Sequence record: ON631220.1
Strand: one strand, 5' to 3'
Length of the DNA: 64,000 nt
Below, piece after piece: positions 51,135 through 57,446 of this stretch; position 1 is the stretch's first letter; each line of letters starts with the position of its first letter. The notes under the pieces are model-generated. The model did not search any database. It was not told the DNA's origin and saw nothing but the letters and a program-made list of their open reading frames with translations. The position numbers and the translations under genes are program-made.

Positions 51135-53015
51135 ATGGCTGTTAACGAAAACGAAATCGGCACCGTTCAAACTCAAGCTACTGCTCCTGCTCCGCAACCC
51201 ACTGCACAGCGTCAAGCTCAACGTCCTACTGGCGCGCCTGGGTCTACTACTGGCATTAACCATCTAATGCGTCGCTCTGGTCGACTAGATGGCTCTGATG
51301 CTCGTTCAGCAGATGCCCTACAAGTATTCACTAAAGTAAAAGAAGAAGCAATCCGCCATCAGGACCTACCTGATGACTTCGATATCCATCGTTTCGATCG
51401 TGATGCGCAACAAGTTGGTATGGCTGGTCTACTCATTGTTAAACTAGCTAAAGATATCAATGGTTCCATGAAGGCATTCGTTCGTACTCTAGTACTCGAT
51501 AACCTACCTGGTACTCGCATCCGTCCCCGTACCCACAAAATCAACAATGGTCTAACCGACGACATCATTGAAGAGAAGGTACTACCGCGTGATGTATTCA
51601 CTGCTCAATACTGGAGCAAGATCGGCGAGTTCCTACGGAACCGTTACAACATCCCTGGTCTAGAAGTACTATCTGCCGGTCCCCGTGCAGTGTATGCTGA
51701 CTTCGACTTCAAAGATGAACTAGCTGTTAAGAACCTACTAGTTGAATCTGTTAACATCTGTGAAGATGCTATTGCACGTCGTAACAATGAGACTCCGTTC
51801 TCTATTGCGACCCACATCAAAGCAGAAAACGAACAGCTTACCTGCAACCTAGACTACAATGGTATTCCGGTTAAAGATAGCTGTGGTAATCCGATCCGTT
51901 CTGACATGGTCATCTCCACTAGCCGTGGTAAGAAAACCAACGTACCTGAGAACGAGTTCTATGATACCGATAGCCAGCTAAACCAAGTTAGTCTATTCGT
52001 AGATCTACATTGGACTCCGACCACTGGCCAGCAACAAGGTATGTTTGGCGTAACTCTACCTGGTGCAGCTCTACCTCCGCAGTTCACTCCTTACATCGTT
52101 ATCACTGACGTTCGTAAGGCATCCTGGATCCAAGCATGGACTCTAGAAATGTGGCTGTTCGCACTCGGTAATGCGTATCGTGCAACTGCATCCCAGGCAT
52201 GGGCTCGTACCCTAATGCCGAAGATCGCTACTAGCAAGATGCGTGATATTGGTGCACTTGGTTATTACTCAGAGCTAGGTAAAGCGATTGAAACTCGCAC
52301 CGAAGCATTCATGGCAGACGACAGCAACTTCGTAATGCTAATGAACAAGATGGTTAACCAGAACCCTGCATTCCAGATCGATATCGATCCAATGGGCGAC
52401 AACTCAGCTATTGAGCAAGTCATCCTAGATGCAGCTGGTGGCGTAAACCAAGCTCGTGCAGTTAGCCTGATCTTCCAAGCTCTAACTAACCTATACGGCA
52501 CTGATTTCCGTCAGTTCTATAACCTAGCTGAAGCTGGTCCGATTATCTTTGACAACCATCATGAAGTAGACCTCGGTCACTACACTGATGAGCATGGCGA
52601 ACTAAGCGACCGTCGTGATCTTGACGTTCTAGGTGCCATGAACATGTCTGAAGGTAATGACCAAGAGTGGAAGACCTGGTATGCTACTCAGGTAGGTAAT
52701 GACCACATTGTGCGTCGTATGAATAACAGTAAAGGCTTCGACAAGATGTACCTAGGTAACGTTACCTATACTGGTCGTGCTCGTCGTCTAACCTTTAACC
52801 CGAAATTCATCACCGCAATGGATGCCGCAGCAGCAGCCGCTGGTGTAACTGTAACCATGGAAAACCTAATTACCAACTTCGGTCAACAGCGCTTCGCTGG
52901 TTACACCGGTATGGGTAACATGGCTGTTTCTGGTAGTGCACAAGTTGGTATGGCTGGCAGCATGGGTCAAACTTACGGCGCTCCTTCCTATAATGCACCG
53001 GGTACCTGGTACTAA
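51135..53015 (+). CDS. chmA: Chimallin / PhuN, major phage nuclear shell protein (phiKZ gp54)
   Basis: 626 aa, flexible N-terminus, recognised sequence; canonical position immediately upstream of the nvRNAP beta-prime gene. Confidence 0.92.
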
Positions 53016-53346
53016 TAGGAAATACCTCGGTAGATAGGGATGTTAAATAAGTAACATCCCGATTCTAATACTGCGACCCTGGTTCACTTCGGTGATAACG
53101 GTTAGGAGTAGGTTCCGTGAAGTAATCGACTAGTGGACTTAGTCTAGGTCGACCTATCACTACACGAGGATGATAGATCACTTAACCGAAAGGAGTTACT
53201 CAAAAGGTGACGTGTGATCAAAAACTACAATGGATGGTAAATGATACTAGTGCCGGTATGCTACAGAGAAGAGCGGAGGTTAAGCTTTGTAGATGACGCT
53301 AGGATCGGGCCAGGCTCCGTTGGTGGTCCATTGTAAAAACTGATAT
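53016..53346 (+). ncRNA. Candidate structured non-coding RNA / 3-prime UTR domain downstream of chimallin
   Basis: At least seven predicted helices, UUCG and GAAA tetraloops, a 7-bp pseudoknot, no ORF; bounded by a terminator. Confidence 0.6.
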
Positions 53347-53368
53347 AGCGGCTCCTTCGGGGGCCGCT
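53347..53368 (+). terminator. Intrinsic terminator
   Basis: AGCGGCTCC-TTCG-GGGGCCGCT followed by a T-rich tail. Confidence 0.85.
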
Positions 53369-53409
53369 TATATCTCCTTTTTTTGTTAATCGATAAATAG
53401 GAGTTTGGT

Positions 53410-54546
53410 ATGGGTCTTTATGCCAAAGTTGTTGATCATAATGAAGTTCATGATCAATTTACGGGTAAACGAATTTATGCCAATGATTACAATACGAGTA
53501 ACTCAGATGAGAAAGAAGAATTTGATAGGCATTTCTATTCTCATTTCCAAGATTCAGAAGCAATTGAAAGTAGTGTAAGCTGTGATTGTCGAGCAATCGA
53601 AGACGCACATAAACTCGGAGTAATCTGTGATATTTGTAATACTCCAGTTGTCAATACTTCTAGCCGTCCTATCGAACCATCAATGTGGGTTCGTACACCA
53701 AAACATGTACGTAGTCTAATTAACCCACGTTTAATCATTATGCTAACCGGATATCTAGTAACTAAAGAATTCGATTTCTTAGCATATCTAACTGATACTT
53801 CTTATCGATACGATGTGGAATCTATTGGTTCTAAAGAAACACGCAGAAAAGTAGATAGGCTACTGCATCGTGGATTTGAAAGAGGATTAAATCACTTCAT
53901 TGATAATTTCAATGAGATCTTCCAATTCCTACTAGATGCAAATATTATCTCTAATAATAAATCCGAATTCGCTCAATTCGTTGCTCAGAATAAAGATAAG
54001 TTATTCCCTAAATATTTACCAGTTCCTTCTAAACTCTGTTTCGTAGCAGAATCAACCACATCTGGTACTTACTTAGATAAACCAATTGAAGCAGCAATTG
54101 ATGCTACCTTAACCTTCGCTAGTATTGATGCATCATCTGTACCACTTAGTCCAATTAAAGCTCAGAATAGGACTATGCGAGGACTAAGACTATATGGCCA
54201 GTTCTACGAGATCTACGCAAAATCACGAATTGCTCAAAAGCCTGGTCTTGCTCGGCGTCACATGTTTGGTGCTCGTCTCAACGCTACGGCACGTGCAGTA
54301 ATCACTTCTATTAGTGACCCGCATGATTATGATGAATTACATATCCCTTGGGGAGTAGGTTGTCAATTATTAAAGTATCATCTAACTAACAAGTTAAAAG
54401 CTAAGTTTAACATGACAACTCGTGAAGCATTCTCATTTGTATATGAGAATGTACTTCAATATAACCAAATCATCGCAGATCTATTTAAAGAGTTAATTGC
54501 AGAAGCAGCCCCTTATAAAGGGATGGGTTGTACTTTTCACCGAAAT
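53410..54546 (+). CDS. nvRNAP beta-prime N-terminal subunit (phiKZ gp55-like), exon 1 (379 codons)
   Basis: Zn-finger CDC...CDIC, RRHMFGARLNATARAVI; ends FHRN at a U-ending 5-prime splice site. Confidence 0.9.
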
Positions 54547-55796
54547 TAATCTATTAAGTTAAAGCGCTACAGATTCTGGGTGTGGTAACCAGGAATCTCT
54601 AATGAGGAATTATGAATGAAGAAATAAGATGGCGTAAAATACCTGGTTTCAATAATTACGAAGTCAGTGATCATGGTCAAGTTAGGAACCTTAAAGGCGA
54701 ATTAATCTCACAACACGAGAATAAGACAACTAAAGGTACTTACCTTACCGTTAACATCCACAATGATGACGGTATTAGAAAGATTCGTTATGTTCATCGT
54801 TTTGTGTGCATGGCGTTTCATGGGTTACCTGAAAACTTTAATGAGTTGGACGTTAACCACAAAGATACCATTAAGCATAATAATCATTACCTTAACCTAG
54901 AGTGGGAAACTCGTAGCGGTAATGTTAAGCATGCATTTATAACCGGTGCCAATAAACATGCACTCGCTGTTAAATGTACAAACATTCTGACTGGTGAAGT
55001 AAATAACTTCATCTCGATGAAAGAAGTAGCCGAGTTCCTAGAGCTTGGTCACAATAAAGGGTTACATGTCGTATTGGGTCATTTAGTTAAACCATTCAGA
55101 GGTAAATATGTATTCGAAGTAAGTGGGGATTATCACCCACAGAAGCGTAAGAATGCAATTGAAGTTTATTGCATAGACTTCAAGACCAACACCTTTGGAC
55201 GATATGTAAACCTAACGCAGTTACAACTTAGAACCGGGTTAATTAAAGGGTCAGTGCAGGACATTTTAAAGAAACCAGATCTAAGATTATTCAACGGTGT
55301 TGTTATCTGTAGGGTCGATGATAAGGAACGGCTATTCGAATACGTTTCTAACCTAACCCAAGAAATGGTTAACAAATCCATTGATGATTACAATAGATAC
55401 AAAGCGCGTAGAGAGAAGCTACATACCACCTAAGCAATTAGTGTAGCGACTTAACTTAATATGGGTTTCCTTGTATCAGAAATGATACTCGACAAAACTT
55501 CTTGAATTGCTGGAACAACTCGTTAGGTCAGTTAGCTACAATAGTTCCGAAAGGTTCTATGAATGCTTAAGAATAACTGAATAGAGTCAATCAGCAGCTA
55601 AGCCGCTAAGTTACTTAACTGTAATATGTGGAACGTTCAACGACTAGTGCATTGGCACGTAGGGTCCAAGTGGACTCGAAGTGGGAAGCACCTTACTGGG
55701 TAAAGCCAAAGGTGAAGATATAGTCTCAACGTCTAGCGAGAGCTAGAGCTGCACGTAATGGTGCGGGTTAGCCTAACGAACTAACTGAAGATATTG
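54547..55796 (+). mobile_element. Group I intron 1 (1250 nt), ORF 5-prime of the ribozyme core
   Basis: P AATTGCTGGAA 55505, Q AATCAGCAG 55589, R GTTCAACGACTA 55635, S GAAGATATAGTCT 55714; ends in G; removal restores HRN-PTLQ. Confidence 0.93.
54612..55433 (+). CDS. Intron-encoded HNH homing endonuclease (NUMOD4-HNH-NUMOD1 type)
   Basis: WRKIPGFNNYEVSDHGQVRN; VHRFVCMAF...VNHKDTIKHNNHYLNLEW...N; GAGGA RBS. Confidence 0.9.
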   Translation: MNEEIRWRKIPGFNNYEVSDHGQVRNLKGELISQHENKTTKGTYLTVNIHNDDGIRKIRYVHRFVCMAFHGLPENFNELDVNHKDTIKHNNHYLNLEWETRSGNVKHAFITGANKHALAVKCTNILTGEVNNFISMKEVAEFLELGHNKGLHVVLGHLVKPFRGKYVFEVSGDYHPQKRKNAIEVYCIDFKTNTFGRYVNLTQLQLRTGLIKGSVQDILKKPDLRLFNGVVICRVDDKERLFEYVSNLTQEMVNKSIDDYNRYKARREKLHTT

Positions 55797-55922
55797 CCAA
55801 CGCTTCAACGTGGATCTACGCAGCAGTTCTTTATTACTAAAGTAAAAGATGACATTAATGATAATTCTATCAGCATGTCAGTTTTATGCCTTAAGGCTCC
55901 AAACGCAGATTTCGACGGAGAT
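55797..55922 (+). CDS. nvRNAP beta-prime exon 2 (42 codons) carrying the catalytic NADFDGD motif
   Basis: PTLQRGSTQQFFITKVKDDINDNSISMSVLCLKAPNADFDGD; missed by the ORF track. Confidence 0.93.
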
Positions 55923-57446
55923 TTTAATTGGTCTCCTAACCTTCTTAATTGCTGGAACCTCCTTAGAGCCTAACTACCAAAGCAGATAGCGAAAGCTAAA
56001 ATGTAACGGTTTGAAAAGTGTTAGGATTGGACAATCAGCAGCGAAGCTTCTACGTATTGCCGTGAGGCGAGATAGGAAGAACGTTCAACGACTATCGAAA
56101 CCACTGCGAAAGCAGCCAAGGGAGTAGAGTAGGGCCAAGTGGTCCGAAATAGAAGGCTTCCCTCTGGGAAGAAGATATAGTCTCACCATCTAGTGAAAGC
56201 TAGAGCAGTTACTTAATGTCGGGAGATATTAAGTGGACGGTACAGCAGCGACATGTCTTCCAATGGAGGATATGTGTTTATTTACAGTCGTATACCCAAA
56301 TCGAGAGAAATTGTGATTCCCGGTACATTCGGGCGTTATAGACTGACTCTGGATGGGTTAGTCTATGATCGATTTTGGATAAATTGATAGATCCAATAAA
56401 CCGACATTACGTTCTTGAATTACCATGGCATAGACTACCCATTCATGTTACTAAGTTGATAGCAGTGTGTTTTAAAGGCTGGCATGCGCCATTAGAGTTT
56501 GTTAGCCGCTGCGAAATATTGTTTTCTGATGGAGATGAAGACAATATTCATCCTAGAAACTTGATTTGGAAATTCCCGGAAGAAGGATTGGAGGTTCCCA
56601 CCTTCCCAGGATATTATTTCATCCCTAGTTTTACCTGCTATGCAATCAATGATGAACTCAAGGTCATAAGTCTTTTTGAAGGTTCAGCTAAATTAACAAG
56701 TTTGGCGACAACTGGATACAGAGATCTTGGATTGCGTCGAGATGATGGCACCTATGTAGGAACGAATTTACACCGTGTAGCTGCACTGACATTTATTGAA
56801 TACGATAACACCATCAATGAGAAAGTGGTCAACCACATAGATGGTGATCGTGACAATACAGTACCCGATAACCTAGAATGGGTAACCCAGAGTGAAAATG
56901 TGTTGCATGGAAATGCAATCAAAACCGGTTATATTGGATCAGCAAAGAATACCGCGATCATGAGAATGTTGAAAAATCGCGGAATTAACACGGACGGAAT
57001 TGTTCTTGAGCACGACGGTATTGAGATAAAGGATATCGTTACGGGTGAAATCAGGAAATATGACTCGCAAAAGAAAGCAAGTGAGGCGATAGGGGTTAGT
57101 GTAGGTACGATTTCTTTGAAAGTTAGCGGACATGCAATTTATCCAGTCATTATGGATAGGTACATTGTACGTCGGGTTGGTTCAGAATGGCCAACCTGGG
57201 ATGAATCCATTGAGTATAGTCAGGCTAAAAAATAAGACCACACTTGTGAAAAATGTGGAAACTGGCGAGATTTTGAAATACAAATCAGCCAAGCAGGCAT
57301 ATCTCGATCTTGGATTATCAAAGAAAGTAGTAACTAGCAAACTCAAAAAGAAAGACCGTCGACCAATTAATGGGTTCATTTTTAAATATGAAAATGACCC
57401 AGATGATTTTTAGACATGTCGCTGACGATGCTGTATGAAGATAGTG
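55923..57446 (+). mobile_element. Group I intron 2 (1524 nt), ORF 3-prime of the ribozyme core
   Basis: P1 GGAGAU/GUCUCC with U-G at the splice site; P 55947, Q 56033, R 56083, S 56171; long-range stem 56241-56258 with 57412-57435 encloses the ORF; ends in G. Confidence 0.93.
56274..57413 (+). pseudogene. Intron-encoded HNH endonuclease interrupted by two compensating frameshifts (about 379 aa if repaired)
   Basis: GGAGG then GTG start with a NUMOD4-like IPGTFGRYRLTLDGLV; shift in a T4 run near 56372; HNH core NHIDGDRDNTVPDNLEW; shift in an A6 run near 57230 into a NUMOD1-like tail. Confidence 0.7.

Follow-up and report, generated by a model that had tools for sequence, protein, structure and literature searches.

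The phage phiKZ is the model nucleus-forming phage, in which chmA yields the first and most abundant essential transcript and the gene that follows the segment described here codes for the polymerase to which transcription is handed over. Structured RNAs of several described kinds invite comparison with that segment. GOLLD, ROOL, HEARO, OLE, and raiA are often phage associated and were found by covariation. Flavivirus xrRNA/dumbbell units and plant virus 3' CITEs are independently folding, pseudoknotted 3'-UTR modules that are duplicated, lost, and exchanged between viruses and that act via the host machinery. A structured RNA also stands just before an intrinsic terminator in HK022 putL/putR, EAR, terminator-coupled riboswitches, and T-boxes, and introns in phages of this type move between coinfecting genomes. 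Shorter RNAs derived from 3' UTRs include 3'UTR_PHIKZ298 of phiKZ (~100 nt) and ncRNA1 and ncRNA2 of PAK_P3 (~210 and ~120 nt) (PMC8545117, PMC10914365).

The segment between chmA and its terminator resembles 3'UTR_PHIKZ298 and the PAK_P3 RNAs in its position from a stop codon to that gene's own terminator, in being cotranscribed with the upstream gene, and in having no transcriptional start site of its own. It differs in being 3 to 4 times larger and multidomain, with covariation and invariant loops that extend across genera. GOLLD, ROOL, HEARO, OLE, and raiA are likewise long multihelix RNAs with pseudoknots or kissing loops; unlike them, this element is only ~320 nt long, is tied to the 3' UTR of one gene, is built of separable modules, and is not matched by their models. 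Its likeness to the flavivirus and plant virus modules is an organizational analogy only, as Pseudomonas has neither Xrn1 nor a cap and no similarity in sequence, nor any demonstrated one in structure, links them. As with antitermination RNAs, the downstream gene depends on readthrough past a terminator; in contrast to them, there is no family match and no evident antiterminator, and many relatives keep the terminator without the RNA. The group I introns found at this locus share its size (~300 nt), raised GC content, and gene neighborhood, but the element lacks a P7/P3 core, an exon context, and an endonuclease open reading frame (ORF).

The window, a 64,000-nucleotide stretch of sequence record ON631220.1, comes from a phiKZ-type phage. 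Positions 52700 to 53700 are 100% identical to several Pseudomonas aeruginosa phiKZ-type phages and 99.3% identical to phiKZ itself (megablast). The counterpart of the segment in phiKZ is AF399011 47,529 to 47,887, with PHIKZ054 (ChmA) on one side and PHIKZ055 (nvRNAP beta') on the other. In the window, the main features of the locus are as follows.

51135..53015, plus strand: chmA (chimallin, PHIKZ054 homologue), from the ORF list, with a 100% tblastn match to the PHIKZ054 "nuclear shell protein"
53016..53342, plus strand: whole structured noncoding element (chmA 3' UTR before the terminator), marked by the lack of a conserved ORF, by pair retention, and by an island of identity
53342..53385, plus strand: intrinsic terminator, with an extended stem (53342-74), a UUCG loop, and then UCC plus U7
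53410..54549, plus strand: first exon/ORF of nvRNAP beta' (N-terminal part, PHIKZ055 homologue)
55447-55748 and 55901-56205: the two group I introns of the locus (RF00028, 87 and 75 bits)

A first-pass annotation, made from the letters of this stretch, had placed a structured noncoding segment directly after chimallin and ahead of a terminator, and both its coordinates and its content were right: the chmA stop codon ends at 53015, the next gene starts at 53410, and the gap between them is 394 nt. The element spans the interval from the stop codon to the gene's own terminator on the chmA strand, the position of a 3'-UTR-derived noncoding RNA. The ChmA protein stops at the residue where homologues lacking the element also stop. 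A simple terminator scan made no call at 53342 to 53385 because a 3-nt spacer separates the extended stem from the U run, yet a terminator is kept at the homologous position in all relatives sampled, including those lacking the element, as a canonical GC hairpin with a UUCG loop and a U run. The nvRNAP beta' gene begins 25 nt past the terminator with its own ribosome binding site and ATG, which leaves no room there for a promoter of its own. No sigma-70-like promoter was called in 53016 to 53342 by a tool whose models exclude phiKZ promoter types. PHIKZ054 belongs to a six-gene operon (PMC8244752).

The first-pass annotation had also called the segment less AT rich than other gaps, and its GC content is indeed 0.44, compared to 0.26 to 0.39 in most other ORF-poor gaps of the window; the remaining GC-rich gaps contain GTG-start or small ORFs or belong to the intron region. 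The minimum free energy of 53016 to 53374 is −118 kcal/mol (z = −3.5), and the UTR minus the terminator has a z score of −2.1. Because this thermodynamic signal is modest, the case for a folded RNA rests on comparative evidence.

Such evidence was available from 55 phage records found by blastn, each with the segment at a single place in the genome. Most (47/55) are Phikzvirus records with 95 to 100% identity, and the other eight are of the PA1C/PS119XW type (84 to 85%). An alignment of ten sequences from phiKZ- and PA1C-type phages gave a consensus fold (alifold) with 108 pairs, 8 of them compensatory. Standard pairs occupied 99.5% of 1,099 pair cells, including those of the pseudoknot proposed in the first-pass annotation, compared to 34 to 44% for slid partners, and each varying helix still pairs. 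The cells include 125 G-U pairs, and the minus strand keeps only 88% of the pairs, an asymmetry that places the RNA on the plus (chmA) strand. A minus-strand RNA and a DNA-level palindrome were rejected on this asymmetry.

Pairwise comparison of phiKZ with PA1C-type phages revealed how closely the element is held. Over 100-nt intervals, it is 79 to 92% identical while its flanks are 44 to 67% identical. The three domains are 86%, 89%, and 91% identical, and unpaired positions of the element 76%, compared to 3/8, 5/9, and 2/8 positions in the linkers (10/25, or 40%). Third codon positions of chmA are also 40% identical (first and second positions, 62 to 67%), and the ChmA proteins of PA1C/PS119XW-type phages are 48 to 49% identical to that of phiKZ. 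Recent horizontal movement of the block as a whole was considered and rejected: a transferred block would keep its linkers alike, and these linkers are at neutral divergence, which points to long-term purifying selection on each domain. Judged from these alignments, purifying selection acts more strongly on domains I to III than on the ChmA protein, and the stems of these domains evolve by compensatory change with loops and junctions fixed.

Domain III, the 3'-most module, shows this pattern most fully.

53226..53335, plus strand: domain III, a three-way junction (CM R1, alignments)
53226-34/53327-35, plus strand: P-a
53243-52/53297-306, plus strand: P-b
53261-68/53285-92, plus strand: P-c, with an invariant 16-nt loop, AGAGCGGAGGUUAAG
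53309-13/53320-24, plus strand: P-d, a short hairpin
53274..53278, plus strand: CGGAG in the P-c loop, proposed kissing/pseudoknot partner, complementary and invariant
53315..53319, plus strand: P-d loop sequence CUCCG, proposed to pair with 53274-78, complementary and invariant

In the long arm of this domain, P-b is followed by an asymmetric internal loop, itself invariant, and then by P-c; GGUAAA (53236-41), the P-c loop, and CCAGGCUCCGUUGGUGG are likewise invariant. In a model-based alignment to which three metagenomic relatives were added, double-sided changes are seen at 21 of 32 pairs, and pairing holds in 97.1% of cells, compared to 31 to 55% in slid controls; none of 500 shuffles matched the observed values. 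Covariation was also examined in a MAFFT alignment. The helix TACAATGGA/TCCATTGTA suggested by the first-pass annotation is P-a, in which 8 of 9 pairs covary, and its CTAGTG/CGCTAG and CTACAGAG/CTTTGTAG helices were confirmed as well. Every stem is rewritten in the L045, L046, and L054 lineages, with loops and junctions unchanged. The two strands proposed to form a pseudoknot (53272-78 and 53315-21) are invariant in 12/12 distinct sequences, even where all stems differ. These data are compatible with pairing of CGGAG (53274-78) with CUCCG (53315-19), a plausible tertiary contact on sequence grounds, and a workable geometry is also plausible, in which P-b runs out, the hinge turns, and P-c returns toward P-d. 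The P-d loop contains GGCUCC, a 6-mer that recurs in the terminator as its 5'-arm core, and the domain is always placed 6 to 8 nt upstream of the terminator stem. By eye, the internal loop between P-b and P-c departs from the K-turn consensus, and a likeness to a type I-F CRISPR repeat covers 7 nt, too short to count.

Domain I, at the 5' end of the element, is a larger junction closed by a long-range helix.

53025..53169, plus strand: domain I, a multihelix junction (alifold plus pair counts)
53026-29/53165-68, plus strand: H1, long-range closing helix, CUCG with CGAG, in which U-A becomes C-G in PA1C
53031-34/53064-67, plus strand: H2
53037-45/53052-60, plus strand: H3
53069-78/53100-10, plus strand: H4, with an inner UUCG-capped hairpin at 53084-95
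53117-22/53154-60, plus strand: outer H5, GUGAAG with CUAUCAC
53126-38/53142-52, plus strand: inner H5 hairpin

Compensatory pairs occur in H1, H2, H3, and both parts of H5 (alifold and pair counts). CM R2 matches domain I in phiKZ and PS119XW and partially in PhiPA3, which retains H1 to H3 and the base of H5, the latter as a perfect 7-bp GUGGUAG/CUAUCAC helix. Its H4 differs in sequence yet keeps its shape and is capped by GAAA, and an insertion of about 170 nt lies at the tip of H5. Eight of the nine helices drawn in the first-pass annotation were borne out across the element. In domain I, these include 53037-45/53052-60, now supported by compensatory changes; TCAC-TTCG-GTGA (53084-95), which is invariant; and TCGAC/GTCGA (53126-30/53148-52), in which A-U becomes G-C in W10-2. 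The exception, CTATCA/TGATAG (53154-59/53171-76), had been misassigned: it fails in PA1C-type sequences and clashes with two covarying helices, 53154-60/53117-22 and 53165-68/53026-29.

Domain II is the most compact of the three.

53176..53219, plus strand: domain II, a three-way junction (alifold, pair counts)
53176-81/53214-19, plus strand: closing helix
53186-93, plus strand: CC-GAAA-GG hairpin
53195-200/53206-11, plus strand: second hairpin

Its closing helix and GAAA hairpin had been read correctly from the single sequence (GATCAC/GTGATC enclosing CC-GAAA-GG). The domain is complete in PhiPA3, where the closing helix carries two compensatory pairs; it is also found in phiHQ, and an A-U-to-G-C change occurs in Temi. 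Compensatory changes in independent lineages are thus found in domain III, in the domain II helix, and over the whole element, the pattern of a conserved structured RNA; the covariation observed among chmA-downstream regions of relatives amounts to the 21 of 32 domain III pairs and the 8 whole-element pairs given above. Comparative evidence confirms the segment as a genuine plus-strand, three-domain folded RNA in the chmA 3' UTR that is selectively maintained.

A key question was whether this RNA belongs to a described family. At gathering thresholds, Rfam 15 (4,227 models) matched only the two group I introns, elsewhere in the window, and gave zero matches on 20 related loci. On 52900 to 53500 at an E value of ≤10, the best scores were 12 to 18 bits against thresholds of 42 to 55, and riboswitch, T-box, antitermination, and ribozyme models were unmatched on the element. 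ARAGORN found 0 tRNA or tmRNA genes in the window, and there was no match to the Rfam tRNA clan, in agreement with the first-pass annotation, in which the segment could not be matched to tRNA, tmRNA, or intron cores. A group I intron was rejected on three grounds: no RF00028 match at an E value of ≤10, no flanking exons, and a gp55 with its own start. A CsrA/RsmA sponge was rejected as well, since GGA is not enriched in the element (9 observed versus 7.0 ± 2.2 expected) and the best-looking sites are not kept in PA1C or L045. An RNA in the chmA 3' UTR is described nowhere in the searchable literature, apart from a remark on PhiPA3 eCLIP data, and the UTR is unmentioned in the main texts of the phiKZ dRNA-seq, Grad-seq, ONT-cappable-seq, and ASO papers. 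With strand-specific covariation, selection, and the lack of an Rfam, tRNA, or intron match, the proposal of an undescribed noncoding RNA or 3'-UTR domain cotranscribed with chmA held up.

The distribution of the element was followed by a profile search of 26 Chimalliviridae chmA-nvRNAP gaps from GenBank and IMG/VR, together with pattern scans of IMG/VR and metagenomes. Every member of the sampled clade has the order chmA, terminator, nvRNAP beta'. Noxifer, D6, and eight UViGs make up ten lineages in which just 13 to 24 nt precede the terminator. The other 16 have inserts of 78 to 569 nt that fall into several unrelated groups, and most show significant structure (z from −2 to −5.6). Domain III occurs alone in three uncultured relatives from the Psa21/D6 clade (L027 = L045, L037 = L046, and L054); between D6 and L027, a 108-nt domain III is cleanly swapped for 5 nt, and L037 has a hairpin plus domain III. 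PhiPA3 lacks domain III and has an unrelated 3' module after part of domain I and domain II, while phiHQ has domains II and III after a different module, common to Psa21 (module X). CM R1 and CM R2 each hit the 64-kb window once and gave no copy at another place in the 26 related loci. Among 185,579 genomes, a search for a cellular counterpart of domain III with the pattern AGCGGAGG-N15-45-CCAGGCTCCGTTGG returned only 7 chance-type matches (~2 expected by chance), all in GC-rich coding sequence and lacking the other motifs; the metagenome scan gave 1 real match (L054) and 4 by chance. By these sequence comparisons, the element is an accessory feature and not a core one, with modules gained, lost, and recombined among Pseudomonas Chimalliviridae, in every case on the chmA side of the terminator. 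What had been drawn as one undescribed, structured domain is structured as proposed, but it consists of three separable modules instead of one fold and is absent from many Chimalliviridae. Modules exchanged among Pseudomonas jumbo phages thus make up an element of ~320 nt that is better conserved than the ChmA protein.

From the combination of invariant loops and junctions with freely covarying stems, we infer a defined three-dimensional fold that is recognized by a partner. Our leading interpretation, to which we assign a probability of roughly 40%, is a factor-binding ribonucleoprotein platform on the chmA 3' UTR that sets the fate of the chmA(-nvRNAP) transcript. Such a platform would ride on the most abundant early phage mRNA, with domain III folding back on itself via a contact between its invariant CGGAG and CUCCG loops. 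The factor bound, from phage or host, would govern the stability or translation of the chmA(-nvRNAP) transcript or its location near the nascent nucleus. The sole candidate factor with any data is ChmC. In PhiPA3, eCLIP of ChmC yielded unannotated high-coverage peaks between chmA (gp53) and gp54, which its authors took for small regulatory RNAs (PMC11077065). This gap is the homologue of the domain I and II region, with domain III absent, and the peaks indicate that, in a relative, this region is expressed and can be cross-linked to ChmC. The chmA mRNA level is unchanged when chmA translation is blocked (PMC12571901), which hints at intrinsic stability. Manual inspection of 10-min Grad-seq data did not flag the region as sedimenting unlike mRNA, an observation that is neutral toward a role in cis. 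The locus itself offers a mutable handle on the stabilization, translation, and positioning of early phage mRNA before and after the shell forms, and on what the RNA-binding shell protein ChmC recognizes.

Two observations concern ChmC itself. The eCLIP support for it stems from PhiPA3, a phage without domain III. ChmC is a core gene product whose binding to phage mRNA is little specific, whereas the element is missing in ten sampled lineages with the same gene arrangement, and these points count against the platform reading.

The element could also act in trans as a stable RNA, with the UTR or its modules cut from the chmA transcript to serve as a decoy, sponge, or regulator, a reading that we consider possible but unlikely. 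Its targets would be a host factor or an RNA-directed defense, with the chmA promoter serving as a strong vehicle for early expression. The patchy mosaic of modules, turning over rapidly in close relatives, is typical of accessory or counterdefense loci; 3'UTR_PHIKZ298 and the PAK_P3 RNAs, which share an mRNA terminator, provide precedent; and the interpretation of the PhiPA3 peaks by their authors fits. However, a processed species from this locus is unreported in the main texts on phiKZ dRNA-seq, Grad-seq, and ONT-cappable-seq, none of the comparisons with tRNA, tmRNA, Rfam families, or GGA motifs offers a target of mimicry, and domain III has no cellular counterpart in the genomes searched. 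The locus likewise offers a handle on possible accessory or counterdefense roles of RNA modules in jumbo phages.

Readthrough at the terminator provides the basis for a more doubtful proposal, in which the RNA, with or without a factor, acts in cis as an attenuator or antiterminator on the phage RNA polymerases at 53342-85 and thereby tunes the ChmA:nvRNAP ratio; the comparison with HK022 put, EAR, or a protein- or ligand-responsive leader is doubtful to the same degree. Given the position of nvRNAP beta' 25 nt past the terminator and the six-gene operon that includes PHIKZ054, expression of nvRNAP beta' needs readthrough. The 6- to 8-nt spacing of domain III ahead of the terminator stem also fits, and the P-d loop could compete for the 3' arm of the terminator through its GGCUCC. 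However, inspection found just this shared 6-mer, with no extended alternative helix and no convincing antiterminator that would pair with the 5' arm of the terminator in a mutually exclusive way. In ten lineages, the same terminator functions with no module, the 3' module of PhiPA3 differs, and the riboswitch, T-box, and antitermination models were unmatched.

More speculative still, the UTR modules might be a new class of RNA cassettes in nucleus-forming phages, autonomous and exchangeable, that kiss intermolecularly via the domain III loops in the manner of phi29 pRNA or the ROOL/GOLLD assemblies, or they might be RNA counterdefense modules; either would be a long shot. Kissing of this kind would gather chmA mRNAs together at the early infection vesicle, or seed condensates of ChmC and RNA there, and an RNA architecture would then help organize where and when the phage nucleus forms. 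In the counterdefense version, the modules would arrive on the earliest transcript.

That the element is a catalytic RNA, either a ribozyme that cleaves or processes itself or a degenerate group I intron relative, is very improbable. Self-processing was among the functions guessed at in the first-pass annotation, with mRNA localization, stability, and shell nucleation; no sign of it was seen. The element's size, complexity, invariant junctions, and possible pseudoknot are compatible with catalysis, and the neighboring gene has two group I introns, 2 kb downstream. However, ribozyme and intron models were unmatched at an E value of ≤10, there are no flanking exons, ChmA ends like its homologues, gp55 has its own start, and the presence of one domain without another in different phages speaks against a single catalytic core.

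The first-pass annotation had stated that the gap contains no ORF; none is conserved, but two short ones exist, of 31 and 38 amino acids (53241-53336, plus strand, and 53065-53181, minus strand). The ATG at 53241 is missing in W10-2, PA7, SL2, T2P, and all PA1C-type phages, and neither frame is conserved. Although several GenBank records annotate two "hypothetical proteins" here, a small protein gene, a DNA-level feature, or a neutral remnant can be set aside almost completely as an explanation of the segment, since that start codon is lost within the genus, indels of 1 to 2 nt separate aligned relatives, substitutions track base pairing rather than codons, the G-U pairs are a strand-specific RNA signal, and the domains are far better conserved than the neutral linkers. 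The "hypothetical proteins" called in the chmA-nvRNAP gap are spurious, a warning to annotators, for whom the modules are candidate families for Rfam-type curation. On comparative grounds, domains I to III, each without a described family, are three candidate new RNA families. Module X of phiHQ and Psa21, with compensatory changes at 11 of its 39 pairs and zero broken, is probably another.

D6 (locus L008) and the uncultured relative represented by locus L027 are close relatives that differ by an indel of domain III of the structured RNA in the chmA 3' untranslated region. When the first 40 nt past the chmA stop codon were compared, the indel was clean, with TAAGACC-AATAG-TGGTTGA in D6 and TAAGACC-(108-nt domain III)-TGGTTGA in L027.

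In all lineages bearing domain III, the 6-mer GGCUCC in the loop of its short hairpin P-d exactly matches the terminator's 5'-arm core. The two copies of this 6-mer in the window lie at 53312-53317 (P-d loop) and 53352-53357 (terminator), and the loop copy could pair alternatively with the terminator 3' arm. A consensus scan misses this terminator (53342-53385) because a 3-nt spacer, UCC, separates the extended stem from the U7 run. At the equivalent position, relatives that lack the element carry a terminator of canonical form.

The chmA 3'-untranslated position is occupied in a Pseudomonas aeruginosa phage (phiHQ) and a Pseudomonas syringae phage (Psa21) by a shared module of ~160 nt, termed X, which is unlike the modules of the element. 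The two copies, 73% identical, lie in the chmA-nvRNAP gap loci as follows:

L003 4385-4556, module X of phiHQ
L004 4402-4562, module X of Psa21

Because 11 of 39 predicted pairs are compensatory between these phages and none are broken, module X is probably a further undescribed structured RNA.

More, unrelated kinds of insert, 80 to 190 nt long, separate the chmA stop codon from the terminator in gap loci L022, L023, L026, L029, L031, and L005/L009/L021; their folding z-scores lie between -3 and -5.6. One insert module is common to L022 and L023. The L026 insert, which starts at its 5' end with CUCCAGUAGAUAGUGG..., resembles by eye the H1-H2-H3 helical core of domain I, and the covariance model of that domain (CM R2) gave no match to it.

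Automated annotation placed two "hypothetical protein" coding sequences within the noncoding RNA region in homologues of 53016-53409 (GenBank records for KEN51, 6B, HPP-Temi, HHBS36_1, ANB1, and others). These coding sequences show no conservation, and it is very likely that they are spurious gene predictions.

Downstream of the terminator, the nvRNAP beta' gene is split within 54550-57235, with the following features:

54549, end of the nvRNAP beta' ORF
54612-55433, HNH-type endonuclease ORF, 3' of that end
55447-55748, first group I intron core (87 bits)
~55794-55900, short exon with the NADFDGD catalytic motif, between the two cores
55901-56205, second group I core (75 bits)
56375-57235, second endonuclease-like ORF, after the second core

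Within the nvRNAP beta' ORF, nucleotide identity to the PA1C-type phage PS119XW peaks at 80% in 54263-54362, versus ~60% in the surroundings, ~200 nt 5' of the intron insertion point. This peak may mark a stretch of the protein under strong constraint, or it may be a tract of co-conversion from intron homing.
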